A DNA stretch of 64,000 nt from Schizochytrium sp. TIO01 (GCA_004764695.1 SMSO01000014.1:7120029-7184028), one strand, 5' to 3'. Counted from the stretch's first letter, positions 2,966 to 64,000 are shown. Translations and numbers: made by a program. The notes: a model not told the origin generated them from the sequence alone.

Positions 2966-3583
2966 ACCCAAGTCTTTCCCTGTGTTGGATGAATATTCTA
3001 CAAGTTAATGGTGGTGGCAGATAATTTTACCATGAGACTTACAAACGAATCACCGAAAGGCAAGGAAATAGTCGTGAGGTTGGGCTGTTTCCTGATGAAC
3101 TCACTTCATAACGAGTTCGCTATCTCTATATGTTATTCCACGAGTCTTCGATGAAATATATAACTCTTAGGCTAACCCTTTGGGGGCCCTAACTTATAAT
3201 CTGACCCTCTACGATATATAAAGAACAGGCGGGAGGGGGGGGGTAATGAAGTCACTCAATAGCGAATTCGCCTCTAGATAAGTTCCTCTCTCATCTACTA
3301 CTGTTATTCGTAGTAGTCAGCTAAGCACTAATACTAATACTGACCCTGGTAGGAAGCTGGACGACAACCTGAGAGCCTTGGAAAAGCAAACCTGTAACAC
3401 TCCGTAAACAGAAAAAAAAAATCTAAAGAGATTCTAAATCCAAAACAGAAGTTGGAATAGGCTCCAGAACCGATACTCACGAGGTATCTTCAAAGCATAC
3501 GCCACGCCAAGTAAAGCAAGTAAAGCCGCTTGGTAGACAGAGATATTATAGGCGCATATAGAAGATCAGCAGCTCCAATTCAA

Positions 3584-5404
3584 ATGTCAAATTTGGCGAG
3601 GCCCTGTGGCGAATTTTACAGTGCTGATCGGCCTGCCATTCCCACTGAAAGCGAAGGAGATATCGAATTCAATGATGTTATTGACGATGACATCAACTTG
3701 GAATTTCTTCAAGAAAGTGAGCCGCTTGGAGGCCAAAGATCTACAAAAGAAGAAACATGGAACTCACCTTCTGCTACTACCTACGAGTACGGGCAACATT
3801 TAGATAAAGCTGGAGATAATCAATCTTTGGCCTTTCAAAATGACCACGAACAGCAGAACTACATGTTCGGCCAGCAAGGAGGCCTTTGGGATGAGGACCG
3901 GAATTACTCCACTGGGAATCACAATTCCTCAAGTGACGCTTCCACAATGGCTGATTTGTCTGCCATTCCCACTGAAAGCGAAGGAGATATCGAATTCAAT
4001 GATGATATTGACGATGGCATCAACTTTGAATTTCTTCAAGAAAGTGAGCCGCTTGGAGGCCAAAGATCTACAAAAGAAGAAACATGGAACTCACCTTCTG
4101 CTACTACCTACGAGTACGGGCAACATTTAGATCAAGCTGGAGATAATCTATCTGTGGCCTTTCAAAATGACCACGAACAGCAGAACTACATGCTCAGCCA
4201 GCAAGAAGGCCTGTTGAATGAGGATCGGAATTACTCCACTGGGAATCACAATTCCTCAAGTGACGCTTCCACAATGGCTGATTTGTCTGCCATTCCCACT
4301 GAAAGCGAAGGAGATATCGAATTCAATGATGATATTGACGATGACATCAACTTTGAATTTCTTCAAGAAAGTGAGCCGCTTGGAGGCCAAAGATCTACAA
4401 AAGAAGAAACATGGAACTCACCTTCTGCTACTACCTACGAGTACGGGCAACATTTAGATAAAGCTGGAGATAATCAATTTGCGGCCTTTCAAAATGACCA
4501 CGAACAGCAGAACTACATGCTCGGCCAGCAAGAAGGCCTTTTGGATGAGGATCGGAATTACTCCACTGGGAATCACAATTCCTCAAGTGACGCTTCCTCA
4601 ATGGCAGACAATAGTCAGCGTGACCTTGGTTTCCACGATTTACCCCCCGATCATCAAGATTTCTCTCACAACAACGACCAAATGGAAGAACCGGCTGTTC
4701 ATGTAGATTCTCAAGAGCGCTCTCAGGATCATGAGGAGGATCAAAACACCCAAAGCCTCGAGAGTGAACGTGAAGTTTTCGAGGCCAGCGGACACCATGC
4801 AGAGGTGCAAAACAATCAAAAGACAGGCCCTGTCGTTGTCGAATGGCACTCTTTTCAGAACAAGATTTACCATTCATACTCCAGTTTTCGCAAGACATAT
4901 GTCATTTTGGGCTACGACAGCGAGCTGCCAAGAAGGATCATCACCAAACTAGAAGCTCGCACGTGGCAGAAGGTCAACGGGCAAAAAGAGGTGATTAACT
5001 GTTCAACAATGCTTGAATGGACTCGGAAGGACTCTACCTCGATCTACACACTCACGTCAAAGCCCACGACCAGCCAACAAACACTTTTCAAGACAACAGG
5101 CAAAAGGGCAATCTGTAGTGCGAAAGTAGTACCTGGAAATAGAATCATTCTGACATACGAATGGAAGCCCACCAACGGGTTCCTGCTTTTCCGCCCGGAG
5201 GACAAGGAAACTAACTCGTTTGGAGTCAGCTTACTCTACAGCCTCGACTCAGCAGGAACTCTTTGTGATCTTGATATCAATACCCCCCTCCATATTTTAT
5301 CAAAATTGGAGGGGACAAAGCGCAAACGGGATATCCCGGGAGATCATAGAATCGAACATGAGCAAATGCAGGAGAGAGTGAAACGTTATTGCAGAGGCGC
5401 ATAA
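3584..5404 (+). CDS. Uncharacterised protein: three 109-aa acidic repeats, then a globular beta-rich C-terminal domain and a KRKR putative NLS; possibly a transcription regulator
   Basis: Open frame 3530-5404 with first ATG at 3584 (the true start may be spliced from upstream). The repeats keep frame. The C-terminus ends TPLHILSKLEGTKRKR. Confidence 0.7.
   Translation: MSNLARPCGEFYSADRPAIPTESEGDIEFNDVIDDDINLEFLQESEPLGGQRSTKEETWNSPSATTYEYGQHLDKAGDNQSLAFQNDHEQQNYMFGQQGGLWDEDRNYSTGNHNSSSDASTMADLSAIPTESEGDIEFNDDIDDGINFEFLQESEPLGGQRSTKEETWNSPSATTYEYGQHLDQAGDNLSVAFQNDHEQQNYMLSQQEGLLNEDRNYSTGNHNSSSDASTMADLSAIPTESEGDIEFNDDIDDDINFEFLQESEPLGGQRSTKEETWNSPSATTYEYGQHLDKAGDNQFAAFQNDHEQQNYMLGQQEGLLDEDRNYSTGNHNSSSDASSMADNSQRDLGFHDLPPDHQDFSHNNDQMEEPAVHVDSQERSQDHEEDQNTQSLESEREVFEASGHHAEVQNNQKTGPVVVEWHSFQNKIYHSYSSFRKTYVILGYDSELPRRIITKLEARTWQKVNGQKEVINCSTMLEWTRKDSTSIYTLTSKPTTSQQTLFKTTGKRAICSAKVVPGNRIILTYEWKPTNGFLLFRPEDKETNSFGVSLLYSLDSAGTLCDLDINTPLHILSKLEGTKRKRDIPGDHRIEHEQMQERVKRYCRGA
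3634..4608 (+). repeat. Intragenic 327-bp tandem repeat x3
   Basis: TGCCATTCCCACTGAAAGCG recurs at 3634, 3961 and 4288; the copies are near-identical. Confidence 0.95.
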
Positions 5405-7068: not shown

Positions 7069-8800
7069 TTTTTTTGTTTGTTTGAGATCAACCTCCCTGA
7101 TGGAGCATTCTTCTCAAGAAAGTACCTCGCTTAATCTCTTTAAAGAGCGTAACTTATAACAGCATCCTCGCAGATTTGATACCAACCTGAGCTCGATATT
7201 AAGGCTGGGTTGTGTGAAATCCTGATAACAAACTACCTAGATGCTTTGTTTTTTAAATTAGCGCTTATTTTCCTTGTTTGAGAGTGTTAAGAATCCATTA
7301 GCATCATCAAGCTTTAACCTTCTCTGATGTTGCATTGTGTAACTATCTTGATCCCCGTGGTATGCCATTATACAAAATTATGTACACAGATAAGACATTG
7401 CACTTTCTATTGTATACACATTCATGATTACATGACCATGGCAGATATAAAGTTGACTGATTTTTCACAGAAATTGAAGTCTATCATGATCACACCCCAA
7501 AACTTCAGTTGGCCATTCCCTGATTCAATCTTCGCATCGTAGACTGAGTGAACACTTCCAAAGCTTAGACCGACACTTTCTGAACGACAGAATGGTGCGT
7601 GTCCAGTCCTCCCCTTATCAACTTGAATCATGTTTCTTTAGAAAATACAAAAGTAGACACTGAAAGCACAGATGCATGCTCTTGCGAACCTAACATCATA
7701 GATTACAACTAAAATAGCTGCATCAGCATCAATCATAATACAAAAGCACTACCAGCGGCATGAAGACAGCTTCAATACAGACGTATCGTAACGTCGAGTG
7801 AAGATATCCAAATCTCAGAGTCAAACCTTATCGTCTGAACCATAGGTCTTATGAATCTTTCCCATTATCAACTAAAATCTGCTGTTGCATTAAGTGTATT
7901 CAAGCATTGAAGCATGCATGTATTCATAGGTACCTCAAATATGCAACTATGAAGGAATGCCGTTTCGCAGACACACGCCACGTTGACAAGTCTTATTCGA
8001 AAATAGAAACTCAAGTCAAAGCACATAGTCTCAGTCCGTATACTTGTGTCTTGATTATTTTCTTCTCTGTCGTACGAAACACTAGCTAGCACCTACCTAT
8101 ACCTCAATAGGGACTTACCTACCTAGTTTGGGGAAAAACTCAAGGCAAAACATCTCTCATCGTGAGAGATTACGGCGTTCTAGGTGATATTCTTCCCCGC
8201 GTTGGCCACAGTACAATAAGTTGTTTTGGAGCCATCATTGTGCGTGCAGTGCTTAAAGCTAGTCAGTTTCCTAGTTCCTCTGGCAGAAGGGTGATGGAAA
8301 TTCAGTCCGTCAGTCAGTCCCTCGTTGGTCTCTTATTCATTCCTGCCCATCGCTGTTCTTAGCCAAGCTCTATCTACTCCTAAGAAGTAAGGTAGAGATT
8401 TTTATTTACTGTCAAATTTAAAAGATAAATAAAGAATAATTAATTAAGAAATCAGTGTCTAAACAATCTTTTAGAAGGGAAAAGGAGAAGGATCTTAAGC
8501 AGAAAAGCGAAGAAGGAGCAAACTTGAAGCTTTCCAAAACCCGATCGATAGGCGCGCCTCAGCGAGTCCTTCTCGCGGTAGGCAGGATCGTTAGTACTCG
8601 CGGTGCTGGATAAGGAAGGAGACAGCAGCGACCGTGCTTCGCAGTAGCAGGTGACTCGACTGCTCTTTCAGGGAGGCGAAGAGATTTTGATAATATTATT
8701 GACGCCTTGCGCAAATTCTTGCCACCACGAAGACTTGGTTCCTAGGTCTTCCGTTGAGACCTTGGGTGACAGTTCTTACAGCAAAGACAGATTGAAAAAG

Positions 8801-11197
8801 ATGGACTTGGCAGCACTTGCTCGCTTCGTAGATGAAGCGAACGTTCCTGGCCTCGCTGGCCAGCTTCAAGGCGCGCGAGTGGAGCGATTCGACGACGGGC
8901 AGTCCAACCCGACCTTCAAGGTGAGTCCGCTTCAAGGCCCTGCTGTGGTGGTGCGCAAGCGGCCAGCAGGAAAGCTCTTACCCGGAGCTCACAATGTACA
9001 GCGCGAATACAGGGTTCTTGATGTGCTTTATAAGCAGAACTTTCCAGTACCTGAACCAATCGTGTACTGCGAAGATACTGGGTTCCTAGGAACTGATTTC
9101 TACATAATGCGTTTTGTGGAAGGTCGTGTATTCCGAGACATGACCCTGCCTGGAGTTCCTGCTGCGGAGCGAACATCCATGTATGAGGCTCTTGTCGACG
9201 TTTTGATCAAACTTCACAGACTCGATCCAGATAAGCTGGGCCTCTCTTGGCTCACTAAGCAACGCGGAAATTATGTTTCACGACAAGTGAAAACCTGGCA
9301 CCGTAATTATGTAGAAAGTGCTCTGCGAGGTACGGATGACGATGCGAAAGACCGTGTCACGGAGCAGCTGATGCATCGTGTTCGAAAGTGGCTCGACACA
9401 CGAATCCAACCTGAGACACGTACGTGTCTTGTTCATGGTGACTTCAAGTTGGATAATGTCATCTTTCACCCCACCAAGCCCGAAATTCTTGCTGTTTTGG
9501 ACTGGGAGATTGTCACCCTTGGGGATCCTCTCGCAGACCTCGCATATTGTTTCACATCTTTCCATGCGATTGGTCTCCGAGGCCTTGTGCAAGGTCCATT
9601 CTTGCGCGACGGTTCTTTGGCCAAGGGCATTCCTCCTTTCGAGGCCTTGGTCTGGCGCTACTGTCAAAGGAGTCCGGACTACTCCTACCCTCTACAAACC
9701 ATGCAAGTATATAACACCTATGCTCGCTTCCGCGTAACTTGTATTCTGGGTGGCATTCGTGGCCGCTTCCTCCGTGGTAATGCGGCATCCTCATCTGCAG
9801 CGAATTTTACCGCTGAGCTTATTTTCTCTTTAGCACGAAACTCTGCTTTGACCGCTGGCTTGGCTGGGGTACCTGAGACAGTCGAAGATGCTATCAAGTT
9901 TGAGGCCAATGAACTTGGCACTCATGAACTCCCACCGCCAGCTTCACCCCGTGCAGTCGCATTGCTCAAACGGCTTAGTAAGTTTATGGATGACTACATT
10001 TACCCCGCCGAACCGGTATATGAGCAGCAAATGGCTCAGTTCCGTAAGGAAGGTAATCCATGGCAAATTCCTCCTATTGTAGAAGAACTGAAGGCACGAG
10101 CAAAACTAGCTGGACTATGGAATCTCTTTCTCGAAGAGTATGGAGGAGTCACACAGGCCGAATACGCAACCATGGCTGAGATCATGGGTCGTAACCTGTG
10201 GGCAGCGGAGGTCTTCAATTGTCAGTTCCCCGACACTGGTAATATGGAGACCTTGCACCTCTTTGCAAATGAAGATCAGAAGAAAACATGGCTGGAACCC
10301 CTCAAGGATGGAAAGATTCGCAGCGCCTTTGTCATGACAGAACCCCAAGTGGCTTCTTCTGACGCGGTGAATATTTCTACGGAGATCCGCAGGCAAGGCG
10401 ACGAGTATGTAATTACGGGAAAAAAACACTGGATTTCAAATGGCGGGGACCCTCGTCTTGGAGTACTCCTTGTCCTAGGTAACACTGCAATGAATACTTC
10501 GGGAAAGCAGCTTCCGCGTCATAAACGCCATTCAGTCGTGATCGTGCCTGCAGATTCGATTGGCATTACATTTTCTAGGCCTATGACAGCCTTCAACTTT
10601 GATGATGCTCCACATGGGCACCTGGAACTTACTTTGGATAGTGTTCGCGTTCCTGTGGCGAATCTTCTCTATGAAGAGGGCACTGGCTTTGAGATTGCCC
10701 AAGCACGTCTTGGCCCAGGCCGCATTCACCACTGCATGCGCACAATTGGTCTCGCCGAGCGCTCTCTGGAACTCCTCCTGGATCGTGCTCTTTCACGCAG
10801 CGCCTTTGGATCGACGCTTTCTGCTATGGGTACAATTCGAAAGGACATTGCAGATTGCCGGATTGCCATTGACCAAACGCGTCTTTTAACTTTGCGTGCT
10901 GCTCACGCGATAGACGCTCTAGGGTCCAAGGCTGCAAGAAAATATATCTCGATGATCAAGGTTGAGGCCCCGCGCATGGCATTAGAAGTCATGGATAAGG
11001 CGATGCAGGTCCATGGTGGTATTGGTGTTTCATATCAATTCCCACTTGCTTCATACTACGCACGTACCCGAACTGTACGGTATATGGATGGGCCCGACGA
11101 AGTCCATCGCGAAACAATTGCTAAGCTTGAGCTTCGCGCACATGAAAGCAAAAACATTCGTCAGCAACCTATCGTTGCTTCTCCAAGCAAACTTTAA
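8801..11197 (+). CDS. ACAD11: Acyl-CoA dehydrogenase 10/11-type protein (APH/kinase-like domain fused to ACAD), peroxisomal
   Basis: N-terminal [15 protein letters not shown] and VLDWE...[10 protein letters not shown]-terminal [32 protein letters not shown] and DGPDEVH. Ends SKL. Confidence 0.92.
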
Positions 11198-24403: not shown

Positions 24404-25679
24404 TTGTTTTCTGGGTCTGGTACGTTTGTTTTCTTCTTCTTGTTTTACTTCTACGTTTCTCTTGGGTTTGGGCCGGTTCTGTAGTGGATATGGCAACACA
24501 CGCGCAAAAAAGAATAACAGGGTCCCAACAATAAACAATTTTTGGTTTGGATCGTCGTCAATTTCGTCCTCTTTCCTCTCGCACACTTCGAAAGACTAGA
24601 TATGATATTGTTGTAGCTCTGCATAAAGGAGGGTGCAGGCTCCAACGAGACAGAGGTTGTGTGTTTGACCTCTCTTGATGTTTTCTAACCGTGAAAAGTC
24701 TTCAAACAAACTTGGGCCGATTGGAGTCCTGTCTACTTACCTATCTACAGATTTTGAGGTAGCAAAACACGATGAGGCAGTGCTGTTATCACAAGATCAT
24801 TATCCACCTCTTAACAAGAACACAGTTACGGAGGACTAATTTATTGAGTCCCTATTTCTTTCCGAGAACAAAACAAAGGAGAGAAGGGAGATAAGGAGGA
24901 ACAAGATTCGGAAATAATCAGACTTTATTCATTTGTTTTGGGCAGGCAGAACCCTTAAATTGCTAGCTTTCTATACCTCTCGAAGCTCAGGAGCAGGGAT
25001 GCGAGTGCATTGTTCTCTTGACAATCAATTGAAGTATAATAGCTAAGTGTGTACATAGGTATGTATCTATAAGTAGAACGTTCACCATCCCACTCGGACA
25101 AGATGGACCTTGCCAGCAGTTCCTGAATGTTAATGCTAACCATTCTTTTCCTTCATTCCTCTATCTACGCTATCTCTTGGTGAACGCCTCACGCTAACTT
25201 GCAATACAATTGCAGAATGCAAAGAAAATCTTTGCATCTAAAAGGACACCTAATAGGAATACTTTTCTTTTGGGGGCCAAGATAATCATTAGCTTATTTT
25301 CCAGATACACTGTCGAATAGGCAGAAAAACTTGTAGAAGGAGACAAATGTAATTTAAAATATTGCACAGGAGCTGAGCACAGCACAAATGGTTCGTCTGA
25401 AGTATCAAGTCCCAGAGGCTTGGCGAAAGCTATGGTGAAGCGTCTGCGACCACCTCATTGTCACTCTAGTCGATTTGCATACGAAATGGTGATCGGAATG
25501 AAAACTTTGCCCTGCATGCAAGTGATTTAGTCGATGAAAATAGGCGCCTTGCACGAGTGAACAAGCTCGCTGACGTATATCATGAGCATGCGTTCAAGGA
25601 GATTTAGACTCTGCACAATGATGTTGCCTGTTTTTTAGTTGTTCGAAAGGGAAAAACAGGAAGAAAAAAAAGGAAAAAA

Positions 25680-25797
25680 ACATTCAACACCGGGGCTTCG
25701 CATGCAGTCCCCTATCATACTACTGACCCGGCCCTACGCGACTTTACTTCTCAGTGCGAATGAGATGAGGTGTTACCCGCGTGGTATGATCGAATGT
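25680..25797 (-). rRNA. 5S rRNA
   Basis: Minus strand ACATTCGATCATACC...AGTAGTATGATAGGGGACT...GTTGAATGT, ~118 nt, terminal helix, followed by oligo-T terminators. Confidence 0.9.
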
Positions 25798-26256
25798 GCT
25801 GAGGAGAGGGTGCATGATGGATTTATACGTATCATTAATGTGATAGTCACTTACTTACTTTTTTGACGACTTAGGTGCAAGGTAGGTAGTATTAGGAGAG
25901 AGTGGAACCTCTGCAGCAAGCATCCCTGCAAAAGGTATTCTAGGAGTAGGCTTTAGGAAATAGGAATAGTCTTGAAAGAGCGAGAAAGAAAGGAGGTCAG
26001 CACATGCAGAACCCTGAGTAGGAAGGTTAGGTTCAGAATAGTAAAATATCCTTTTACTTCAAGAGCACCAAAAAACATCTCCTTCTTAGGGGAAACCATA
26101 GTAACTCAGCAGTTGCACAACTCTCTCATCGACTTGCAGCTTTACGTCCAGCAGGTTCGAAACCTTGTGCAACGACTGGGACTGTGCCACGAGCTTAGCT
26201 GAAAAGGCACACGCACGCGCCCGCTGGTTAAGGTATAGATCGTTACTTGCTGCGCG

Positions 26257-26333
26257 ATGTCAGACAACCCAGATGTTGTCTATGCCCTTGAAAAGCTTCA
26301 GAATGGCGCTACAACATTGAGGTAAGTTAACAC

Positions 26334-26410
<77 letters not shown>

Positions 26411-29400
26411 GGTAGTGGTTTGTTTTGTTGGATCGCAAGTTCATGCGATTGCTTGTTTCGTTGATTTATTGAGTATGCATCAATCGAAGAAACATCAAAA
26501 TGACAGCACAACAAAGGTGAAATCCTGAAAGCCAACCTAGATCACTCACGTCCATGCATGCACCTAATATAATGTATCATGTGTAATGTATTGCTGGCCA
26601 TCATTCAATCAAATCGACAGTCTTGAAGGCAACTGTATGGGCGACCATGACGCCAAGGCAGTGGCTGTGGCGCTGAAAGAGAACCGGTCGCTGACATCAC
26701 TTGAGTAAGTTGTCTACGCAACACCACAGTTCGTGGACTTGTTTGAACATGATGCTTGCTTTGTTATTTGGTGGGTGGGTCGGTGTTGTTTTCCAAGTTT
26801 ATGCAATCGCTTGTTTGTTTGATGGATGGATAAGTTGTCTATTTGACTGAGTATGCATTCATCGAACAGACAGCAAAATGACAACACAACAAAGATGAAA
26901 TCCTGAAAGCCAACCTAGATCACTCATGTCCCTGCATACATGCATGCATTTAATGCAATGTAATGTATTGCTTGCCATCATTGAATCAAATCGACAGTCT
27001 TGAGTATAACAATATTAGCGACGAGGGCGCTAAGGCAGTGGCTGCGGCGCTGAAAAAGAACCGGTCGCTGACATCACTTGAGTAAGTTGTTTTAGCAACA
27101 CCACAGCTCATGGACTTGTTTGTACATGATGCTTGCTTCGTTGGTTGTTATTTTGGTCGGTGTTGTTTTGCACGTTTATGGCAATCGGTCGTTTGATGGA
27201 TGGATGAATAAGTTGTCTTTTTGAGTGAGTATACATCCATGGAACAAAGAGCAAAATGACAACACAACAAAGATGAAATCTTGAAAGCCAACCTAGATCA
27301 CTCATGCCCCTGCATGCATGCCATGATTGACTCAAATCGACAGTCTTCAAAAAAACGAAATCGGCCCAGGGGGCGCCAAGGCATTGGCTGCGGCGCTGAA
27401 AAAGAACCGGTCGCTGAAATCACTTTAGTAAGTTGTCTTAGCAACACCACAGCTCATGGACTTGTTTGTACATGATGCTTGCTTCGTTGGTTGTTATTTT
27501 GGTCGGTGTTGTTTTGCACGTTTATGGCAATCGGTCGTTTGTTTGATGGATGGATAAGTTATTTGTTTGACGAAGTATACATCCATCGAACAAAGAGCAA
27601 AATGACAACACAACAAAGATGAAATCCTGAAAGCCAACCTAGATCACTCATGCCCCTGCATGCATGCCGTGATTGAATCAAATCGACAGTGTTTCTAACA
27701 ACAATATCGGCGAAGATGGCGCCAAGGCATTGGCTGCGGCGCTGAAAGAGAACCGGTCGCTGACATCACTTGTGTAAGTTGTCTTAGCAACACCACAGCT
27801 CATGGACTTGTTTGTACATGATGCTTGCTTCGTTGGTTGTTATTTTGGTTGGTGTTATTTTGCACGTGTATGGCAATCGGTTGTTTGTTTGATGGATGGA
27901 TAAGTTGTCTGTTTGACTGAGTATGCATCAATCGAAGAAACATCAAAATGACAGCACAACAAAGGTGAAATCCTGAAAGCCAACCTAGATCACTCACATT
28001 CATGCATCCATGCATCTTATGTAATGTGTAATGTATTGCTTGCCATCATTGAATCAAATCGACAGTCTTGACGTCAACAAGATTGGCTCAGAGGGGGGCA
28101 AGGCATTGGCTGCGGCGCTGAAAGAGAACCGGTCGCTGACAGAACTTGGGTAAGTTGTCCTAGTAACACCACAGCTCATGGATTTGTTTGAACATGATGC
28201 GTGCTTCTTTGGTTGTTATTTTGGTCGGTGTTGTTTTGCGAGTTTATGCAATCGCTTGTTTGTTTGATGGAAGGATAAGTTGTCTATTTGACTGAGTATG
28301 CATCCATCGAACAAAGGCCAAAATGACAGCACAACAAAGATGAAATCTTGAAAGCCAATCTAGATCACTCATGCCCATGCATGCATGCCGTGATTGAATC
28401 AAATCGACAGTCTTAATGGCAACGATATCAGCGTCGAGGGCGCCAAGGCATTGGCTGCGGCGCTGAAAGAGAACCGGTCGCTGACATCACTTTAGTAAGT
28501 TGTCTTAGCAACATCACAGCTCATGGGCTTGTTTGCACATGATTGCTTGGTTGGTTGTTATTTTGGTCGGTGTTCTTTTGCACGTGTATGGCAATCGGTT
28601 GTTTGTTTGATGGATGGATAAGTTGTCTGTTTGACTGAGTATGCATCAATCGAAGAAACATCAACATGACAGCACTACAAAGGTGAAATCCTGAAAGGCA
28701 ACCTAGATCACTCACGTCCATGAATGCACCTAATGTAATGTATCATGTGTAACGTATTGCTTGCCATCATTGAATCAAATCGACAGTCTTTATCGCAACG
28801 ATATCGGCGAAGATGGCGCCAAGGCATTGGTTGAGGCGCTGAAAGAGAACCGGTCGCTGACATTACTTTAGTAAGTTGTCTAAGCAATATCACAGCTCAT
28901 GGACTTGTTTGTACATGATGCTTGCTTCGTTGGTGTGTTATTTTGGTCGGTGTTGTTTTGCAAGTTTATGTAATCGATTGCTTGTTTGATGGAAGTTATC
29001 TGTTTGACTTAGTATGCATCCATCGAACAAAGATCAAAATGACAACACCACAAAGATGAACTACTGAAAGCCAACCGAAATAACTGACGTCCATGCATGC
29101 CTCTATCTAATGCAATATAATGTACTACTTGCGATCATTGAATCAAATCAAAAGTCTTGGAGGGAACAAACTCGGCGAAGATGGCGCCAAGGCAGTGGCT
29201 GCGGGGCTGAAAGAGAACCGGTCGCAGACATCACTTGTGTAAGTTGTCTAAGCAACACCACACCTCATGGACTTGTTTGTACATGATGCTTGCTTCGTTG
29301 GTGTGTTATTTTGGTCGGTGTTGTTTTGCAAGTTTATGTAAGCGCTTGTTTGTTTGGTGGGAAAAAAAGTTGTCTGTTTGACAGAGTATGCACCCGTCGA

Positions 29401-32400
29401 ATAAACAGCAAAATGACAACACAACAAAGATGAAATCCTGAAAGCCAACCTAGATCACTCACGTACATGCATGCATGCGTGCATCTAATGCAATGTAATA
29501 AAGTGCTTTCCATCATTGAATCAAATTGATAGTCTTTCTAACAACAATATCGGCGAAGATGGCGCCAAGGAAGTTGCTGCAGCGCTGAAAGAGAACCGGT
29601 CGCTGACATCACTTGAGTAAGTTGTCTAAGCAACACCACACCTCATGGACTTGTTTGTACATGATGCTTGCTTCGTTGGTGTGTTATTTTGGTCGGTGTT
29701 GTTTTGCAAGTTTATGTAAGCGCTTGTTTGTTTGGTGGGAAAAAAGTTTGTCTGTTTGACTGAGTATGCATCCACCGAACCAAGATCAAAATGACAAGAC
29801 AACAAAAATGAAATCCTGAAAGCCAACCTAGATCACTCACGTCCATGCATGCATGCGTGCATCTATTGCAATGTAATATAATGCTTTCCATCATTGAATC
29901 AAATCGACAGTCTTTCTGAAAACAAAATCGGCTCAGAGGGCGCCAAGGCATTGGCTGTGGCGCTGAAAGAGAACCGGTCGCTGGCATCACTTGTGTAAGT
30001 TGTCTAAGCAACACCACACCTCATGGACTTGTTTGTACATGATGCTTGCTTCGTTGGTGTGTTATTTTGGTCGGTGTTGTTTTGCAAGTTTATGTAAGCG
30101 CTTGTTTGTTTGGTGGGAAAAAAAGTTGTCTGTTTGACAGAGTATGCATCCGTCGAATAAACAGCAAAATGACAACACAACAAAGATGAAATCCTGAAAG
30201 CCAACCTAGATCACTCACGTCCATGCATGCATGCGTGCATCTATTGCAATGTAATATAATGCTTTCCATTATTGAATCAAATCGACAGTCTTTCTGAAAG
30301 CAAAATCGGCTCAGAGGGCGCCAAGGCATTGGCTGCGGCGCTGAAAGAGAACCGGTCGCTGACATCACTTGTGTAAGTTGTCTAAGCAACACCACACCTC
30401 ATGGACTTGTTTGTACATGATGCTTGCTTCGTTGGTGTGTTATTTTGGTCGGTGTTGTTTTGCAAGTTTATGTAAGCGCTTGTTTGTTTGGTGGGAAAAA
30501 AAGTTGTCTGTTTGACAGAGTATGCACCCGTCGAATAAACAGCAAAATGACAACACAACAAAGATGAAATCCTGAAAGCCAACCTAGATCACTCACGTCC
30601 ATGCATGCATACGTGCATCTATTGCAATGTAATATAATGCTTTCCATCATTGAATCAAATCGACAGTCTTTCTGAAAACAAAATCGGCTCAGAGGGCGCC
30701 AAGGCATTGGCTGTGGCGCTGAAAGAGAACCGGTCGCTGACATCACTTGTGTAAGTTGTCTAAGCAACACCACACCTCATGGACTTGTTTGTACATGATG
30801 CTTGCTTCGTTGGTGTGTTATTTTTGTCAGTGTTGTTTTGCAAGTTTATGTAAGCGCTTGTTTGTTTGATGGATGGATAAGTTGTCTGTTTGACCGAGCA
30901 TGCATCCATCGAATAAACAGCAAAATGACAACACAACAAAGATGAAATCCTGAAAGCCAACCTAGATCACTCACGTACATGCATGCATGCGTGCATCTAA
31001 TGCAATGTAATAAAATGCTTTCCATCATTGAATCAAATTGATAGTCTTTCTAACAACAATATCGGCGAAGATGGCGCCAAGGAAGTTGCTGCAGCGCTGA
31101 AAGAGAACCGGTCGCTGACATCACTTGAGTAAGTTGTTTTAGCAACACCACACCTCATGGACTTGTTTGCACATGATGCTTGGTTGGTTGGTTGTTATTT
31201 TGGTCGGTGTTGTTTTGCACGTTTATGGCAATCGGTTGTTTGTTTGATGGATGGATAAGTTGTCTGTTTGACTGAGTATGCATCGATCGAACGTACATCA
31301 AAATGACAACACAACAAAGATGAAATCCTGAAAGCCAACCTAGATCACTCACGTCCATGCATGCACCTAATGTAATGTATCATGTGTAATGTATTGCTTA
31401 CCATCATTGAATCAAATCGACAGTCTTCAAGACAACGATATCGGCGAAGATGGCGCCAAGGCAGTGGCTGTGGCACTGAAAGAGAACCGGTCGCTGACAT
31501 CACTCAAGTAAGTTGTCTAAGCAACATCGCAGCTCATGGACTTGTTTGTACAGGATGCTTGCTTTGTTGTTTGGTGGATGGGTCGGTGTTGTTTTGCAAG
31601 TTTATGGCAATCGGTTGTTTGTTTGATGGATGGATAAGTTGTCTATTTGACTGAACATGCATCCATCGAACGTACAGCAAGATGACAACACAACAAAGAT
31701 GAAATCCTGAAAGCCAACCTAGATTACTCACGTCCATGCATGCATGCATCGGATGCACTGTATTGTACTGCTTGCCATCATTCAATCAAATCGACAGTCT
31801 TGGGGGCAACCAGATCGGCTTAGAGTGCGCTAAGGCATTGGCTGCGGCATTGAAAGAGAATCGGTCCCTGGAGTCACTTGCGTAAGTTGTCTTAGCAACA
31901 CCACAGCTCATGGACTTGTTTGTACATGATGCTTGCTTTGTTGATGTGTTATTTTGGTCGGTGTTGTTTTGCAAGTTTATGCAATCGGTTGTTTGTTTGA
32001 TGGATGGATAAGTTATTTGTTTGACGAGGTATACATCCATCGAACAAAGAGCAAAATGACAACACAACAAAGATGAAATCCTGGAAGCCAACCTAGATCA
32101 CTCACGTTCATTCATGCATGCGTGCATCTATTGCATTGCAATGTAATGTATTGCTTGCCATCATTGAATCAAATCGACAGTCTTAGAAAAAACAATATCG
32201 GCTCAGAGGGGGCCAAGGAAGTTGCTGCAGCGCTGAAAGAGAACCGGTCGCTGACATCACTTGAGTAAGTTGTTTTAGCAACACCACACCTCATGGACTT
32301 GTTTGCACATGATGCTTGGTTGGTTGGTTGTTATTTTGGTCGGTGTTGTTTTGCACGTTTATGGCAATCGGTTGTTTGTTTGATGGATGGATAAGTTGTC

Positions 32401-34008
32401 TATTTGACTGAACATGCATCCATCGAACGTACAGCAAGATGACAACACAACAAAGATGAAATCCTGAAAGCCAACCTAGATCACTCACGTCCATGCATGC
32501 ACCTAATGTAATGTATCATGTGTAATGTATTGCTTACCATCATTGAATCAAATCGACAGTCTTCAAGACAACGATATCGGCGAAGATGGCGCCAAGGCAG
32601 TGGCTGTGGCACTGAAAGAGAACCGGTCGCTGACATCACTCAAGTAAGTTGTCTAAGCAACATCGCAGCTCATGGACTTGTTTGTACAGGATGCTTGCTT
32701 TGTTGTTTGGTGGATGGGTCGGTGTTGTTTTGCAAGTTTATGGCAATCGGTTGTTTGTTTGATGGATGGATAAGTTGTCTATTTGACTGAGCATGCATCC
32801 ATCGAACGTACAGCAAGATGACAACACAACAAAGGTGAAATCCTGAAAGCTAACCTAGATCACTCACGTACATGCATGCACCTAATGTAATGTATCATGT
32901 GTAACGTATTGCTTGCCATCATTGAATCAAATCGACAGTCTTTATCACAGCAATATTGGCGAGGAGGGCATCAAGGCGGTGGCTGCGGCACTGAAAGAGA
33001 ACCGGTCGCTGACATCACTTGAGTAAGTTGTCTTAGCAACACCACAGCTCATGGGCTTGTTTGTACATGATGCTTGCTTCGTTGGTTGTTATTTTGGTCG
33101 GTGTTGTTCTGCAAGTTTATGGCAATCAGTCGTTTGATGGATGGATGAATAAGTTGTCTGTTTGAGTGAGTATACATCCATGGAGCAAAGAGCAAAATGA
33201 CAACACAACAAAGATAAATGCTGAAAGCCAACCTAGATCACTCACGTCCATGCATGCATGCGTGCATCTATTGTAATATGTAACGTGTAATGTATTGCTT
33301 GCCATCATTCAATCAAATCGACAGTCTTAGTTGCATCTATATCGGCGACGAGGGCGCCAAGGCATTGGTTGCGGCGCTGAAAGAGAACCGGTCGCTGACA
33401 TCACTCAAGTAAGTTGTCTTAGCAATAGCTCGTGAACTGGTTTGTGCATGCGGCTTAGTTGGTTGGTTGCGTTGTGGGGCGTCTAGTGTGTTGTTTTACC
33501 AATGTTTTTTTTAACACTATTGCAAATTTGTTGTGGAATTGTTTGTTTGATTGGAGTGGATCCAACAGAGAGCACGATAACATCAGAAAATAAATGCAAC
33601 TGTACTGTCAATACTGTGGGTGCCTTTTAATGACGTGAACTGTTAACTGACGAACGGAGTTGATGTCATTTGGGTTTTACTGATATTAGTATATTCTGGA
33701 GAGCGGATGAAATGTACGAGGAGCTCGAATTGAATGAAAGTATTTATTCTGCAAAGACAAGAAGAAAAACGATTGAACAGATATCTTGTGAGCTTCGTTG
33801 TATACATGTTGTAAACGATGCACTTTCTCTGCCGTTTGCAGTGAAGCGTAGTCTTCTTACACAAACTTGGCCTGTTAACAGCTCTAATGAGCTGAGTTCA
33901 AAAGAGGACTACCTTGCTGCGCAGAAAGTAGAGCTTGATTTGCTGGAAGCTGCAAATGTTGCCTTTAGTGAAGCATTGGGATGTCTAGGCCCTTATATTT
34001 TTGAATAA
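26257..34008 (+). CDS. Spliced 21-exon leucine-rich-repeat protein (RI/NLRC3-type LRRs, one per exon), predicted 659 aa
   Basis: Exon 1 is 26257-26321 (MSDNPDVVYALEKLQNGATTL). Nineteen 84-nt exons start at 26621, 26998, 27344, 27690, 28066, 28411, 28787, 29155, 29533, 29911, 30289, 30667, 31045, 31424, 31798, 32181, 32560, 32939 and 33325, each AG|T...|GTAAGT and each encoding LxxNxIGxxGAKAxAxALKENRSLTSL. The last exon is 33690-34008 in matching phase 2. Total 1980 nt with no internal stop. Confidence 0.88.
26334..26410. repeat. (GCTT)n microsatellite in intron 1 of the LRR gene
   Basis: Directly visible perfect tetranucleotide run. Confidence 0.95.
26411..33425. repeat. Tandem array of 19 intron+exon units, period 345-386 bp (mode 378), lying between a 5S gene and the rDNA unit
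   Basis: Periods measured between exon starts. Conserved intron blocks such as ATCCTGAAAGCCAACCTAGATCACTCA and GAATCAAATCGACAG. Confidence 0.97.
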
Positions 34009-48300: not shown

Positions 48301-50492
48301 GAACTCATAAAGGAATTTTTGTTTCAAAAACACATTTCGCGAGAGCACCCCCTAAAATATAAAGAAACAGCTATCGAACGATTTGCAACTTAATCTTTGA
48401 CAGTGATGTGTTTGGGAGAAAGCTGTGTGCAAAGTCCCAGTAAAGGATTCGTAGGCAATCATTTATTTGCCACAATTGATATGTTTCAAAATACTTCAAA
48501 ATTTGCAGTCATCGTACAGATTCAAAAGAAAAGAAGAAACTCTCTCCCCAGTTCAGGAAGAAGTAGTAGAAGATCCTGTGCGGCCAAAACATGTAATATC
48601 TTGCTTTGACGGTAGTGCAGGTAAAGTTGTTGCTGGGCAAGCATTGTTCTCATTAGTATAATTGCAAGTTCTAATTTATACGCTAAGGAAGAGAATTCTT
48701 CAACTAATCTTCTAGATAGATTAAACTATATTCTGCATTTTCGTTTCTGTAGTCAAGTGTGGGAAGAGTAAAGGAGAAGCATCAGAACTTGAATCAAATC
48801 ATGGACAACTGCTCCAGGCGTTCCGACCGTGCGGAGGTGGAGCATAGTGGGTGGTGCGCTTGGCCTAGCAAAGATGCTGGCTTGTCTACCTGCGCTTGTA
48901 GGTTGCCTCCGGTTCCTTCTGGCTTACCGCCGAACGAACGATGATGAGATCTGACCACAGCAAACTTGGCTCTGCGATACTTCGACGAGGCTCGAGCTCC
49001 TGCCAGCACCGCTGCTTTGGCAAGATGGGTCTCTGTCTCCGCCAGCGAGCACAGTGTTAAGTGCTAAGCTTTGATTCTCAATTATAGGAGGTGCTTACGC
49101 CTCAGAAAGGTCTGTGAAACAAGTGAGGTCTTGTTGGAGAATCAGCTGTCCACCTGAAAGGAGGTCTGGCACCAAGCCTAAACCATGGCCTCTGGGATAA
49201 AGGAATCAATGCTGGGTCACAAGCCTGGTCATTCTCACAATGCGGCTGTTTTGCTCATTGATACATTTTTTGTAAAATTCGCCGCTGACGAGAGTAATGA
49301 ACAATTATTCACAAACACGAGCGACTTCACGGGTCACAAAAATATTCAAAGTGCTCTGCACATTTTGGCTAGGATAATAGCAATGGGAGACTTTATGAAT
49401 AAAAGGTTTTTTAATATGGTTCATCTACAGTGTAGAACCTTTCACCACATAAGCAATTACCGCGGTGACAATTGCAAATATTAAAAGTGGCTATGAACTC
49501 CGCAGTGCATTCAATTGGTCCATATGTAGATGCCATTTTCCTGCATTGTCGTTCGCACTGAGCTGTGCACGAAAAGCAGTCAACTGAACATTGGAATTCT
49601 ACTGTTGCGACAATAACAACGTTCTATTGAATTTTACGCTAGCTAGGTCATGGCTTTGGTTTATTGGTCTAATGAATATGTTCCTTGTAGTAGGTATCTG
49701 CCGAAGTACCAATACTAACTTAGTTTAGGGAAAATGAAACATAAAATGTTGTACATCACCAGATGGCCAACGTTTCTCCTCTCAAAAACCCAGATCAATT
49801 CAGGTCGCTGGATCATTGAATTTAGAATTTCTGATACCTATCTTTGTTTCGAATTATAGTAAATTAAACACGGTTGTCTTCAGGGAAGCTACTGAAAATT
49901 TCATTTCTTTAAATCTGCTGCTGAAGGGTATCTTTAACATGTACAACTTTTGTGCTGTTACCTTGAGCCCGCCACCTGGGGCAAAGGGAGAAGAGAAAAA
50001 GTGAAGCCTCGGGCAAACGAATGGCGCTTCAAATGAACAATATAACTCGATTGATAGCGGCGATGAGAATGATATTTGTAAAGCAAGTACGACCTTTTTC
50101 TGTGGAACCTCTATTCATTTTACCGAGATCTTAAAGTTGTACTTTTCATTTGTTTCTGCAAACGTACTTTCCAGATGATGCAGTTACTGACCATGGCTTC
50201 CCCAAGTAAATCACCGATTGATGCAAAGTAAGTTCGATTCTTTATCTCTTTGTGTCTATTCTTAATTCGAATTTTTTAATGCATTGCAAAAAACAGGATA
50301 CACCAATCTTGTGATTCCCTATGATTTTATTACTCAGGAATACTAATAGTGTGTCATCGATACCAGTACGTATGACAAAATTGAAGAAAATTGACCCTGC
50401 TTTGAATGATAAACTAATATTTTTGCTCAATTATTAGTGATTCATATAAAAAATGAGTGGCTTGAAAGGGGGAGGAAAGCAAAAAAAAAAAA

Positions 50493-50610
50493 ACATTCAA
50501 CACCGGAGCTTCGCATGCAGTCCCCTATCATACTACTGACCCGGCCCTACGCGACTTTACTTCTCAGTGCGAATGAGATGAGGTGTTACCCGCGTGGTAT
50601 GATCGAATGT
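50493..50610 (-). rRNA. 5S rRNA (second copy)
   Basis: Near-identical to 25680-25797 (one visible substitution, CGGAGC vs CGGGGC), with a T-run terminator. Confidence 0.9.
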
Positions 50611-50694: not shown

Positions 50695-50916
50695 TATTGA
50701 AGTAGTATACAGCTACTGCCTAACCTAACCTAACCTAACCAAGCCCTCATGTCCGACACATCCTGTGTATCGGACTGACATCATACATTCATCCCTGCCT
50801 GTATCCAGACCCGAAACCCCAATAACTCATATATCATCCTCTTTCTCTTTCTCATGAGTTCGCCATCCTTGTCAGACTACCTCTGCACGCTCCACAGCAC
50901 AAGCTACTCTGCAATA
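50695..50916 (+). mobile_element. Solo LTR of a Ty1/copia family with 5-bp target-site duplication
   Basis: Termini TATTG...CAATA; GGTAT on both sides (50690-50694 and 50917-50921); diverged reverse complement of 57176-57408, which abuts the copia pol remnant. Confidence 0.85.
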
Positions 50917-51099
50917 GGTATCTTTTCTTCGAGTTTCTCTGGCCTGTCACAAACACAGAAGATCCCTCTTAGGCTTCTGCTATGGAGTAATTTGTTTTAC
51001 TTTGTTGAAGTACAAGTTGATGTCTCGTAGCAGCAATGTTGGTAAACAACAAGTCTAGTATTATATTCGAACAGAAACATATAACACAAACTAACATAT

Positions 51100-56975: not shown

Positions 56976-57175
56976 CCTATGCTGGAGACAAGAAAGAAAG
57001 TTACTGGGTGCTACTATTCCTAATGAGTTAACCACCTGGTTATAATATCTAGTGTTACAAAGTTGAATATAATGAGAAGTGCGTTTTAAAACTAATAAAG
57101 GGACTACCCAAACACGGCTGTGGCTGTGTACACACATGGTCTCAGCTGCTTTAAAACTGACTCGAACAATAACCT

Positions 57176-60060
57176 TATTGCAGATTAGCCTGTGCTGTGA
57201 AGCGTGGAGAGGTAGTCTGACAAGGATGACGAACTCAGGAGAAAAAGAAAGAGGATGATGTATGAGTTATCGGGGTTTCAGGTCTGGATACAGGCAGGAA
57301 TGAATGTATGAATGTCAGTCCAATACACAGTATGTGTCGGACATGAGAGCTTGGTTAGGTTAGGTTAGGTTAGGTGAGGTTAGGCAGTAGCTGTATATTA
57401 CTTCAATATGTTCATTCACAGAGTCGTCAGGATGATCACTTAACTCTTTGAGAATAAATGGAGTTTTAGTGCCATTGCAAATTTCCATATTACATCGTCT
57501 AAGGGCTTTTTCACAATACTCTCGTTGGCTAATGGTACAGATCTTTTGTGACTTGTCATAGACATGTGTGTCACTAAGATAATGACATTGTTTTTCACGG
57601 TAACTTTGACGCCGATATTTTGTTCGAGTTATTCGACAATCGCTTTTAGTGCTTGGGGAGTGCCAAAGATTCTCATGTCATCAACATTGATAGTCATTAG
57701 AAGATCTTTGCCAATAAAGAGTAATGCATCCGTTATGGATCGTGTTAAGCCATAATTTTCTAAGATAGCTGTCAAATGATTCATCCGCCTACGGGGGGTA
57801 CGGGGGGGCACTTTTGAGTCCATACTGACTTTGACGCAGACGATAACAATATCCTTCTGCTAAGTCAAGACCTTCAATACCTTTGATGTAGAGGAATTCG
57901 TCATCTGGAATTTGTGCTTCTAGAAATGCAGCTGTTACATCAACGGTGATAGCATAATAACCTCTCGTTAAAGCAATAATTGTTGCGACACGAATGCTTT
58001 CAGCATTAACTGTTGGTGAGTATATATCATAAACATGTTCAATGACCTCATTGTAGCCTTGTACTACAACCCGTGCGTTTAACAGATTGACCGGTGCTGT
58101 CTTCTTTGTGTAGACACATCTAGTTAACATTACAGTCTGTCCCTGTGGTAAAGTGTGTAAGGGTACAGTTTCCAGAACACCAGCGGACTGCAGATTGTGA
58201 TGTCCAGTAGTCATAGCAGCAATCCATAGTTGCTGATATGCATGTGGCAGTTTCCGCATCTCTTTATAGGTATTTGGAACTACAATGTCGTCATATGGAC
58301 ATGGTTTTGGAACCGGTTTAGTTAATTGTTTATGTTCTGTGTTGTTTATAACAAGAAAAGCAAAAAGTCCCTGTTCCCTCGGATGTATCGTGGGAATGAT
58401 TAGTTTATGTGAGGTCTCTTCCTTTGATAGAGAATTTATATCCGAGAAATCTAACTCTGTATTCGTCATATTACGTTTTCGTTTCAGACGATTGGTATAG
58501 TATCGGTATTTATTTGCAGCGCCTTTGGCACTGGGACCAAGATTTAGTGGTACATAAGATTTGGGAGTCCTTTTGGATCTCCGATGACTACCGTGTGCAT
58601 GGACTGAACTATGTTCGAGTTCCATGTCTTCACGAGCATTTTCACTATTGGATTCACGGTCATCATTATACTGTGGGGTATTAGTAGTGATAAAGGATTT
58701 AGTGCTATTAACTGTGGAGGGTAAAGCAGGTAGTTCCTGATATATTTCTCCGTCAATCAATTTATTTGATTCTTCACGTGTCCAATGAGTAATTAGATAA
58801 GGTGCCAGAACGGTTTCTAGCGACATTGTACGCTGGCGAGTTTGCTTGATCGAAAACCTTGACTGCACGCGTTTGAAGAATGTTGAACTTGTCTTTGGAT
58901 AAGACGTGTACAGTTCCATGAGTGTAATCATTAGCATATCCAAGGAAAATGCCTAGTCCACCCCTATCTTCCAACTTTCGTGGAATAGGAAACTTCTTGA
59001 AAACACATGGTGCTCCAAAACGGTGGAAGTAGCTGTAGTCTGGTGCTTTGCCAAAGTGTCGTTCATACGGAGACTTCCGATTGCGACTGGAAGCTATGCG
59101 ATATTGATATGTACAGCATGAGATAAATCATATGGCCAATATTTGGCTCCGAGTAATGCAGTTTTTAGGTTGGAGCGAAGACGATTCATAAGTACTTGAT
59201 TGATGCCTTCGGCAGGATTTGTAGCATGAGAATGCGGTGCAGATAGTTCATGTTTCCACCGTATGGTGTAAAGTAATCTTGCAAATTCTCCGCTTGTGAA
59301 GTATTTAGCTCCGTCTGTTCTAATGTTAATGCGCGAGCTGTTTTTACCTTTAAGCCATGTTTGGGCAAACATACGAAGGACATTGACACTTGATCCGTGG
59401 ATTGTATGGAATAAACGTAGGTAAAGTCTGAGTAAAGATCTCTGTAGACTATAGCATATTTGAACTTGTTGGGGACGCCTACAACGTGGAATGGTCTCAT
59501 CACATCAGCTGTAACAGCTTGTCGAGTAGACTTAGCATATGGTGTGTGAGGTCCTTTTGTCACTGGAATACGTTCAAAGTTGGCAAGTTTACAATCCAAG
59601 CATAGAAAATCGATTTGTGATGCTGAAACTCCTAGGGAGGACGCTATGCGTGGAATTGAAGCCTGACCTAATTTAAGGTGAGCGTCTAGCCAATCGATTA
59701 CTTTATAACTGAGTTTTTGTGTTTTCCGTAGTTGCAGAGCATTGACTTTGGGTGCTTTTACAGGAATAAGCATTGGAAAGTCGGATTGCTGACCGAGTGA
59801 AATAACTTCTCCATGTGGAGTGGTCATACGGTCGCTATCCTTTGAGAAGAAAAATGAAAATCCTTGCTGAGTCATAATAGACTGCTGAGATCTCCAATCG
59901 AAGGAACTAGTGGACAAGACATTGCTAGAGTTCTTGGTGTCCTTTTGTAAAACCCCATTAGACATAAGGTTTACGATATAGCAAGAGTAGGCAACCAGAC
60001 TCATGTGGCAGCCAGAGCCAAGAACTTGAAGTGTGAATACACATTACCTACATCCAAGCA
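57176..60060 (-). mobile_element. Degenerate Ty1/copia LTR retrotransposon (integrase then RT fragments, 3' LTR at 57176-57408)
   Basis: GAG-pre-integrase H..LG..CLDC; integrase TAD..PF, IRTDGA, P..H..N.AE..N; LGIFLGY; RT NARVVVQGY, YSPTV, DVTAAFL, YGLKS and NVDDM. Domain order INT-RT is copia-type. Multiple frameshifts; gag, RNase H and 5' LTR were not seen. Confidence 0.9.
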
Positions 60061-63944: not shown

Positions 63945-64000
63945 CTGTGCGTATAAATGAATAAGTTTGTTTTGTTCATTCGTTGTCAGAGTAGACAGGT

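Follow-up and report, generated by a model that had tools for sequence, protein, structure and literature searches.

Genes in which each leucine-rich repeat (LRR) occupies an exon of its own are already known from a brown alga and a ciliate. In the case of Ectocarpus the ROCO genes carry one 24-residue LRR per 72-nt exon and display exon shuffling and positive selection at the concave face, with a proposed immune role (PMC3341825), and the candidate receptors of this alga comprise both LRR-ROCO and NB-ARC-TPR proteins (PMC3341825; PMC11378527). Tetrahymena has thousands of LRR genes, subtelomeric and pericentromeric, that are built as arrays of exactly 90-bp exons with an extreme phase-2 bias, and for which unequal crossing-over, a link to a LINE-like element and purifying selection by Ka/Ks have been reported (PMC6564038). 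The LORE-TEARS of group 0 in Aurantiochytrium limacinum, in contrast, have been treated as non-coding; they lie between 5S and 18S rRNA genes, comprise ~385-bp units (mean 9.3), show no GenBank similarity and contain G-quadruplexes in 32% of elements, in a genome of ~62 Mb with TTAGG telomeres whose subtelomeric 18S-28S genes are transcribed towards the telomere and whose 5S genes are transcribed away from it (bioRxiv 10.1101/2023.06.15.545109). Here we analyse 64,000 nucleotides of Schizochytrium sp. TIO01 (GCA_004764695.1, SMSO01000014.1:7120029-7184028), referred to in its entirety as the window and numbered from its first letter, and in particular a 378-bp tandem array at 27023-33425 (Tandem Repeats Finder). 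We consider it probable that this array is an intact, transcribed and spliced LRR gene of 21 exons and 659 codons, that it belongs to a germline binding repertoire, and that it is at the same time a LORE-TEARS group 0 spacer.

Its position and its period mark the array as a LORE-TEARS group 0 element (the published supplement gives statistics only, with no consensus), as a first-pass annotation of the window had proposed and as its place between 5S (-) and 18S (+) bears out. The same annotation thought that an LRR link might already be noted in the LORE-TEARS paper, which is not so, since neither LRR nor leucine occurs there as a word (bioRxiv 10.1101/2023.06.15.545109). Shared with the published elements are the unit length (378 bp here, range about 346-386), the 5S/18S placement and the TTAGG telomeres, whereas here each unit appears as an exon plus an intron of an LRR gene that is expressed, there are 19 of them as against a mean of 9.3, and the present copy lies 7.15 Mb into a long contig and not at a visible end. 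A full-text literature search found no paper tying Aurantiochytrium, subtelomeres and LRRs together, and it is the rDNA-embedded setting (rDNA, ribosomal DNA) and the reinterpretation of the spacer that are new, not the one-LRR-per-exon kind.

With Tetrahymena the locus has in common one repeat per fixed-length exon, a phase-2 bias, subtelomeric enrichment and an exon number that varies among paralogues; the ciliate genes, however, have 90-bp exons, encode 29-30 residues and number in the thousands, while here 84-nt exons of the ribonuclease-inhibitor (RI) type make up ~100 rDNA-embedded genes that end in a helical C-terminal exon of their own and whose hypervariability signal is much stronger and sharper than the one reported for the ciliate. 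The LRR-ROCO genes of Ectocarpus, likewise a stramenopile, combine one LRR per constant-length exon with exon shuffling and concave-face selection, but they are fused to a ROC-COR GTPase and have no rDNA link, whereas the present gene has neither GTPase nor NB-ARC and its repeat is a 28-residue RI-type LRR. NLRs (NOD2, NLRP1, NLRP3, NLRC3), ribonuclease inhibitor and the LRR domain of tropomodulin share the 28-residue strand-helix repeat, the LRR_6 family and, through a paralogue model, fold matches; NACHT, CARD and PYD are absent here and the tail is a lineage-specific helical hairpin, so that the likeness to NLRs is one of fold class only. Lamprey VLR germline genes are incomplete and are completed somatically by copy choice. 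Although diversity on concave-face LRR residues and many nearby donor units are found in both cases, the germline gene described here is complete and open, so that assembly of the VLR type is not borne out, and the combinatorial, immune-like recognition system that the first-pass annotation had envisaged stays a hypothesis.

If the gene reading is right, the published 'long repeated spacers' of Aurantiochytrium chromosome ends turn out, in the case of group 0, to be a large family of expressed genes, and Labyrinthulomycetes would be the third independent eukaryotic lineage, after brown algae and ciliates, with LRR proteins made from fixed-length, fixed-phase one-repeat exons. This lends weight to the idea that fast-evolving binding proteins arise repeatedly by way of a one-repeat-exon architecture.

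Gene structure, exon constraint and spliced contigs

The gene extends over 26257-34008 (+); it begins with an ATG exon of 65 nt, continues through 19 exons of exactly 84 nt each and closes with a terminal exon of 319 nt. A script run over the window located 20 GTAAGT donors between 26322 and 33409, and for the last 19 of these 20 an AG acceptor is found precisely 84 nt 5' of the donor, in the context tcattgaatcaaatcgacag followed across the splice site by TCTT. All 20 introns are of the form GTAAGT...AG and of phase 2, exon 1 with its 65 nt placing every later intron in that phase, and the spliced model provides a frame of 1980 nt (659 codons plus stop) with zero internal stops. An in-frame TAG lies 21 nt upstream of the ATG, and TACTGAT occurs 6 nt ahead of the terminal-exon AG, where the preceding sequence ends in ...ttttactgatattag. 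Every LRR exon reads as a 28-residue RI-type repeat, x-L-x-x-N-x-I-G-x-E-G-A-K-A-L-A-A-A-L-K-E-N-R-S-L-T-S-L; exon ends vary (GA, TC, AA, GT, TA and similar) and the next LRR exon begins with T. Because the introns are all of phase 2 and the LRR exons start with T, any unit junction is in frame and stop-free, the split codons TA/A, TA/G and TG/A being impossible. The units of ~378 bp, each an intron of this form plus an 84-nt LRR exon, with 19 open exons and 659 residues, had been drawn in the first-pass annotation, and the script reproduces every coordinate. The features of the gene and of the module that encloses it are as follows; LRR exon coordinates are from the script.

25679-25797 (-): left module border, a 5S rRNA gene divergent from the LRR gene (Rfam RF00001, 96.5 bits)
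26100-26256 (+): putative promoter and 5' untranslated region, a conserved 5' region (mean column identity of 96% over 5 paralogous loci, exon 1 included)
26257-26321 (+): exon 1, with the ATG, 21 codons plus 2 nt, N-terminal cap MSDNPDVVYALEKLQNGATTL, GTAAGT donor (script)
26334-26410 (+): (GCTT)19 microsatellite in intron 1, perfect, directly after the first donor (Tandem Repeats Finder)
26621-26704 (+): LRR exon 2, 84 nt, phase 2-2
26998-27081 (+): LRR exon 3
27344-27427 (+): LRR exon 4
27690-27773 (+): LRR exon 5
28066-28149 (+): LRR exon 6
28411-28494 (+): LRR exon 7, spliced joint to exon 8
28787-28870 (+): LRR exon 8, joint from exon 7
29155-29238 (+): LRR exon 9, acceptor context caaaag
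29533-29616 (+): LRR exon 10, joint to exon 11; 97% unit identity with exon 14
29911-29994 (+): LRR exon 11, joint from exon 10
30289-30372 (+): LRR exon 12, codon-9 difference from the copy on contig C4
30667-30750 (+): LRR exon 13
31045-31128 (+): LRR exon 14
31424-31507 (+): LRR exon 15, 98% unit identity with exon 18
31798-31881 (+): LRR exon 16, the most distinctive exon; joint to exon 17
32181-32264 (+): LRR exon 17, joint from exon 16
32560-32643 (+): LRR exon 18
32939-33022 (+): LRR exon 19
33325-33408 (+): LRR exon 20
33690-34008 (+): terminal exon, encoding a lineage-specific helical domain of 105 residues, then TAA (open frame; RNA-type contigs start there)
34009-34150 (+): 3' untranslated region, approximate (contig depth drops past 34100; contigs cannot show the true end)
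37748-43269 (+): 18S-5.8S-28S rRNA unit, same orientation as the LRR gene, right module border (Rfam)

Intron 1 of a paralogue at 22.6 kb of contig C13 opens with the same GCTT motif. Antisense frames of 101 residues recur at 29712-32091 (-), one per unit in several units, and most likely just reflect the repetition of the sequence.

In the genome assembly (G000, 64.07 Mb in 37 contigs, with the present array at 7.15 Mb of contig C13) we sampled 13 arrays, this one and those of 12 other loci, that together hold 120 exon cores. Not one of the 120 has a stop in the expected frame; the AG stands at -84 in 119 of them and the GTAAGT donor in 118, so that 118 of 120 are 84-nt exons with AG and GT in place, a regularity far beyond chance. 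The introns between the sampled exons come in about 30 different lengths (162-366 nt). Length change is tolerated everywhere but in the exons.

Logan contigs from four public runs of four studies (X1, X5, X6 and X13, 35-40 Mb each and guessed to be RNA) were aligned over 28300-34299. GT..AG joints are present at 28494>28787 (exons 7>8) and at 29616>29911 (exons 10>11), in each case in contigs of X1, X5 and X13, and at 31881>32181 (exons 16>17) in X1, X5 and X6, with a shorter side of up to 69 letters. The last of these is seen in a 177-nt contig of X6 that matches the whole of exon 16 with zero mismatch and continues beyond the joint with 69 letters of exon 17, and its 24 letters 5' of exon 16 would derive from the end of exon 15. 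In both X1 and X6 there are contigs whose first letter is position 33690, where the terminal exon starts; loose contig ends past 33408 run into the start of another LRR exon and not into GTAAGT, and past 34100 the depth of contigs, until then in the hundreds or thousands, drops to 0-42.

A separate line of evidence comes from transcripts of paralogues. Among 1.84 billion representative proteins the terminal exon matches three clusters only, whose members are MMETSP transcript open reading frames (ORFs) and JGI fragments. One MMETSP ORF, P0004, starts with a translated intron tail (MYCLPSFNQIDS) followed by one LRR exon that is joined directly to the C-terminal exon, and P0002, P0005 and P0008 each combine several LRRs with the C-terminal domain. 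P0008 maps to G000:C35:19923-21561 (-) in pieces of ~28-36 residues that are 250-360 nt apart, and therefore this more distant subfamily, too, is spliced and keeps each LRR in an exon of its own. Retrocopies are not evident, since the frames around the 103 terminal exons, of 105-140 residues with one of 193, are too short for joined LRRs. The hidden one-LRR-per-exon gene postulated in the first-pass annotation is thus supported both by joints at the predicted boundaries in RNA-type contigs and by spliced transcripts of paralogues.

Exon skipping, which had been suggested as well, is not. The sole GT..AG skip joint among those listed, 29616>31424, is letter-for-letter identical to the canonical junctions 14>15 and 17>18, an ambiguity of the repeat, and the other long 'skip' joints carry foreign letters that fit paralogous transcripts and were rejected as evidence for skipping.

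Repeat fold, helical tail and hypervariable codons

An exon-by-exon search matches 15 of the 19 LRR exons to Pfam LRR_6 (PF13516) with a best E of 8.5e-05; the sole recorded bit score, 19.4 for a single exon, is below the gathering cut-off of 23.4 because the model straddles the exon junction. Alignment of the 19 exons gives the consensus LxxNxIGxEGAKALAAALKENRSLTSL, that is the RI-type pattern (28-29 residues, LxxLxLxxNxIGxxGxxxLxxxL), and exons of 84 nt fix the repeat period at exactly 28 residues. A profile of these exons run against the PDB returned RI-consensus designed LRR proteins, LRRC34, radial spoke protein 15 (RSP15) and the entries 5irm and 5irl, both named 'Uncharacterized protein' in the profile search and titled rabbit NOD2 in Foldseek output. 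The paralogue P0008 scores 81.8 bits on LRR_6, and in its AlphaFold model (pTM 0.70) strand and helix alternate every 28 residues in a regular solenoid, after which come two long helices; with this model Foldseek finds the LRR domains of tropomodulin (E 4e-09) and leiomodin as well as NOD2, NLRP1, NLRP3 and NLRP14. The RI-type solenoid anticipated in the first-pass annotation is therefore seen in the model of this paralogue.

The terminal exon of the window gene is modelled as two long helices with a disordered linker between them (pLDDT 71). It has no match in Pfam, among PDB structures by Foldseek or in the ESM Atlas, and no similarity to the helical region of a neighbouring kinase gene. Exon 1 has no Pfam match either. 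Pfam searches of exon 1 and the terminal exon, the remaining exons being LRRs, reveal no NACHT, NB-ARC, ROC-COR, TIR or kinase domain in the gene, and without a nucleotide-binding or signalling domain it is neither an NLR nor a ROCO gene. Inspection of the 21 residues of exon 1 by eye reveals no hydrophobic, signal-like stretch; on this basis the product is probably intracellular, in the cytosol or nucleus. The label 'receptor' used in the first-pass annotation is consequently not retained, as the gene lacks a signal peptide, a membrane segment and a signalling domain and has only the lineage-specific helical tail. Two scans of metagenome contigs, one with alignment A1 and one with P0008, returned no relatives.

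Nucleotide diversity (pi) was calculated over unique sequences from the 13 arrays, comprising 80 unique exons and 85 unique exon-plus-intron units. In the 80 exons, variation is concentrated at five codons, the x of x-L-x-x-N-x-I-G-x (codons 3, 4, 6 and 9 and the split codon), with pi of 0.55-0.70 at all three positions of each, as opposed to 0-0.18 at the interleaved L, N, I and G codons. Over the 85 units mean pi is 0.535 for all hypervariable nucleotides and 0.074 for scaffold nucleotides, with values of 0.109 at scaffold third positions and 0.125 over 293 well-aligned intron columns. Unit pairs whose introns diverge by 0.3% differ by 5.3% at hypervariable sites and by 0.3% in the scaffold; at 2.4% intron divergence the corresponding figures are 38% and 3.3%, and hypervariable divergence levels off near 55% at 3-6% intron divergence. 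In young unit pairs the five codons thus change about 16x faster than the adjacent, presumably neutral introns, and as the contrast is present in such pairs it is not an effect of saturation. Each variable codon is represented by 13-24 different triplets, in nearly free combination (67 haplotypes in 80 exons).

In the LxxLxLxxN frame the variable codons correspond to x5, x7, x8 and x10 plus one loop position. Positions x5, x7 and x8 are placed on the concave sheet because the strand in the P0008 model covers L-x-L-x-x. The pattern, read from sequence and from a model of a relative, points to diversifying change on concave-face residues, the predicted binding face.

rDNA modules, unit exchange and competing explanations

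The 5S gene is located 460 bp upstream of the ATG of the LRR gene, and the 18S gene begins 3.7 kb downstream of its stop. Rfam places 18S at 37748-39535, 5.8S at 39621-39771 and 28S at 39923-43269, all on the plus strand, and in the window 28S is followed by tRNA-His and tRNA-Arg. A second 5S gene at 50492-50610 (-), with no adjoining LRR first exon or array, shares only 135 bp around the 5S with the copy at 25.7 kb.

Across the genome we find at least 408 matches to the unit, at least 103 to the terminal exon and at least 81 candidate first-exon regions, with 5S and 18S flanks, and the order of 5S followed by first exon recurs at other loci. The ATG and terminal exons, called unique in the first-pass annotation, are so within the array but not in the genome. 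The family comprises ~100 genes, each in a fixed module of 5S, LRR gene, ~3.7 kb spacer and 18S-5.8S-28S, and the modules sit in rDNA-bearing, mostly subtelomeric regions of what is an Aurantiochytrium-type thraustochytrid. Both ends of contig C3 carry TTAGG telomere repeats, from which the LRR arrays are 20-27 kb away, and other copies are 3-30 kb from contig ends bearing TTAGG repeats, while the present copy has more modules beyond it on C13. Match coordinates give first-to-terminal-exon spans of 2.3-8.8 kb over the family and therefore roughly 5-22 units per gene. The ATG, 65-nt length and donor of exon 1 are kept in five paralogues, 96% conserved together with 157 nt upstream; about 95% of the terminal-exon matches are stop-free, with TAA or TAG inside at least five of them.

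Head-to-head LRR-rDNA modules also occur deep in long contigs (C13 at ~4.00-4.07, 5.67-5.72 and 7.15-7.31 Mb; also C34, C30 and C24), for example on C13 with an 18S (+) at 4,025,026 facing an 18S (-) at 4,059,765. It looks as if these were either chromosome ends joined in the assembly or internal rDNA islands; the published A. limacinum assembly has one internal site only (bioRxiv 10.1101/2023.06.15.545109).

Unit identities within the array (92-99% for units 10-14, 98% for 15 versus 18 and 88-92% for 4, 5 and 7) point to local duplication together with non-adjacent conversion. A near-identical second copy of the gene, with 5S, first exon, array and terminal exon, is found at G000:C4:2109-10477 (-), the very start of contig C4, and is collinear and 97.8% identical over 6 kb. 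The 102 mismatches between the two copies are clustered in intron 9 and exon 10 and from intron 17 through intron 18, in addition to the alignment edge; exon 10 is swapped for a different unit in the C4 copy, and at the hypervariable codon 9 of exon 12 the whole codon differs (TCA/GAC) between almost identical flanks. To judge from these alignments, such patches are conversion footprints and include a very short tract. In the C4 equivalent of exon 17 the donor is ATAAGT instead of GTAAGT, which a mutation of the splice site could explain, as could an error in the assembly. The claim of the first-pass annotation that the gene is 'built for shuffling' by crossover or conversion is upheld to the extent that germline unit duplication and patchy conversion are visible and exon number varies across the family.

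In the reading that we prefer, that of an expressed LRR gene family, units would be gained, lost or exchanged in frame by virtue of phase-2 introns and T-starting exons, ectopic recombination among rDNA-bearing chromosome ends would homogenise introns and scaffold codons, and selection would keep the concave-face codons different, with short-tract conversion as its probable source of variants. The encoded proteins would bind their targets in the cytosol or nucleus and make up a germline-encoded repertoire of binding surfaces, diversified in the germline over evolutionary time and not somatically. Recognition of variable ligands, such as viruses or other parasites, would be the most likely function, with a probability that we place somewhat short of even. 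Since a Pol II gene lies between Pol III and Pol I genes in every unit, an unusual coupling to rDNA, rDNA homogenisation and receptor diversification would share the same DNA. A more speculative extension, which we hold to be improbable, is an immune-like, rDNA-coupled system, in a unicellular heterotroph, in which every chromosome end with rDNA has a separate member of the LRR repertoire and rDNA recombination doubles as a diversity generator via short-tract conversion; in such a variable-receptor or adaptor system possibly only some ends would be expressed at a time, or diversification would take place in vegetative cells. Aurantiochytrium is culturable and genetically transformable and carries persistent mirusviruses, so that the immune hypothesis is directly testable.

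Several observations weigh against the reading of an expressed binding repertoire. The RNA type of the runs is guessed, the contigs provide no expression level, strand or transcript ends, and joints are explicit for three of the 20 junctions of this gene, for which the near-identical C4 copy could be the true source of the contigs. Intron-only contigs, of lower depth, are present in the same runs, so that these also contain unspliced RNA or DNA. Evidence for the fold derives from P0008, whose sequence belongs to a different LRR subfamily, the gene has no signalling domain, and the term LRR is absent from the supplements of the published A. limacinum proteome, where protein-level evidence was sought.

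The alternative to which we give most room, while still considering it unlikely, accepts an expressed family but assigns it a role outside immunity. The proteins might work in rDNA, nucleolar or telomere function, for example by binding RNases or chromatin factors of the chromosome ends in the manner of RI, or they might be engaged in conflicts with selfish elements, in mating recognition or in telling self from non-self. The fixed place of every copy in the rDNA module, the ribonuclease-inhibitor-type fold and the lack of NACHT, TIR, kinase or other signalling domains are all as such a role would have it. A housekeeping partner, however, would not select 13-24 codons at each of four binding-face codons, nor a rate of change about 16x that of introns, and the neighbouring gene, at ~60.6-64.0 kb, joins an LRR exon of this type to a kinase, which suits a role in sensing. 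Strong homogenisation of introns and scaffold codons could alternatively mean that the genes are expressed but largely functionless and hitch-hike on the concerted evolution of subtelomeric rDNA, their frames being repaired by conversion from a few master copies, and the few damaged copies (the interrupted terminal exons and the ATAAGT donor of the C4 copy) fit in with this. We nevertheless think such hitch-hiking distinctly improbable, given that 118 of 120 sampled exons are fully intact despite free change in intron length and about 95% of the terminal exons are open, and that conversion alone would erase the sharply localised codon diversity.

Diversity could also arise somatically or at the level of RNA, by VLR-like cassette assembly or conversion in vegetative cells or by regulated exon skipping. 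Any exon-to-exon join is in frame and stop-free, many donor units are close by, and a whole codon has been swapped between otherwise almost identical copies; but the germline gene is already complete, the 29616>31424 joint and the other long joints have the explanations given above, and contigs are unable to resolve isoforms, so that we regard this mode as very improbable. Most doubtful of all, and scarcely credible on the present evidence, is the published interpretation of LORE-TEARS as non-coding structural spacers for chromosome-end maintenance, with LRR-like frames as relics. The group 0 description (~385 bp x ~9 between 5S and 18S, no GenBank similarity, G-quadruplexes in 32% of elements) speaks for it, while spliced transcripts, invariant 84-nt open exons amid variable introns and conserved ATG and terminal exons do not. 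Exon constraint, conserved ends and spliced transcripts together make a non-coding reading untenable as the sole explanation; the group 0 array may have a structural role on top of its coding role.

Other features of the window

A second LRR-type gene, of other architecture, is present at 60648-63979 (-) and runs off the end of the window. It has an LRR exon (…NNIGGEGAKAVAKSLRK) at 63860-63979 and a 770-residue ORF at 61101-63413 with a Pfam Pkinase domain (E 8e-29), and Cys-rich, RING/IBR-like stretches are found in the C-terminus of this ORF and in the next ORF, 60648-61019. Remnants of a Copia-type retroelement occupy 57789-60004 (-), with RVT_2 (E 2.4e-16) at 57789-58940 and an adjoining 272-residue ORF, and a 200-bp inverted repeat pairs 50719-50919 with 57172-57374. 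Two further tandem repeats are unrelated to the LRR unit, one at 1955-2964 (285 bp x 3.6) and one at 3633-4605 (327 bp x 3.0), the latter within a 624-residue ORF at 3530-5401 that has no Pfam match. An 848-residue ORF at 8651-11194 (+) encodes an APH-type phosphotransferase fused to a complete acyl-CoA dehydrogenase, an ACAD10/11-like architecture.

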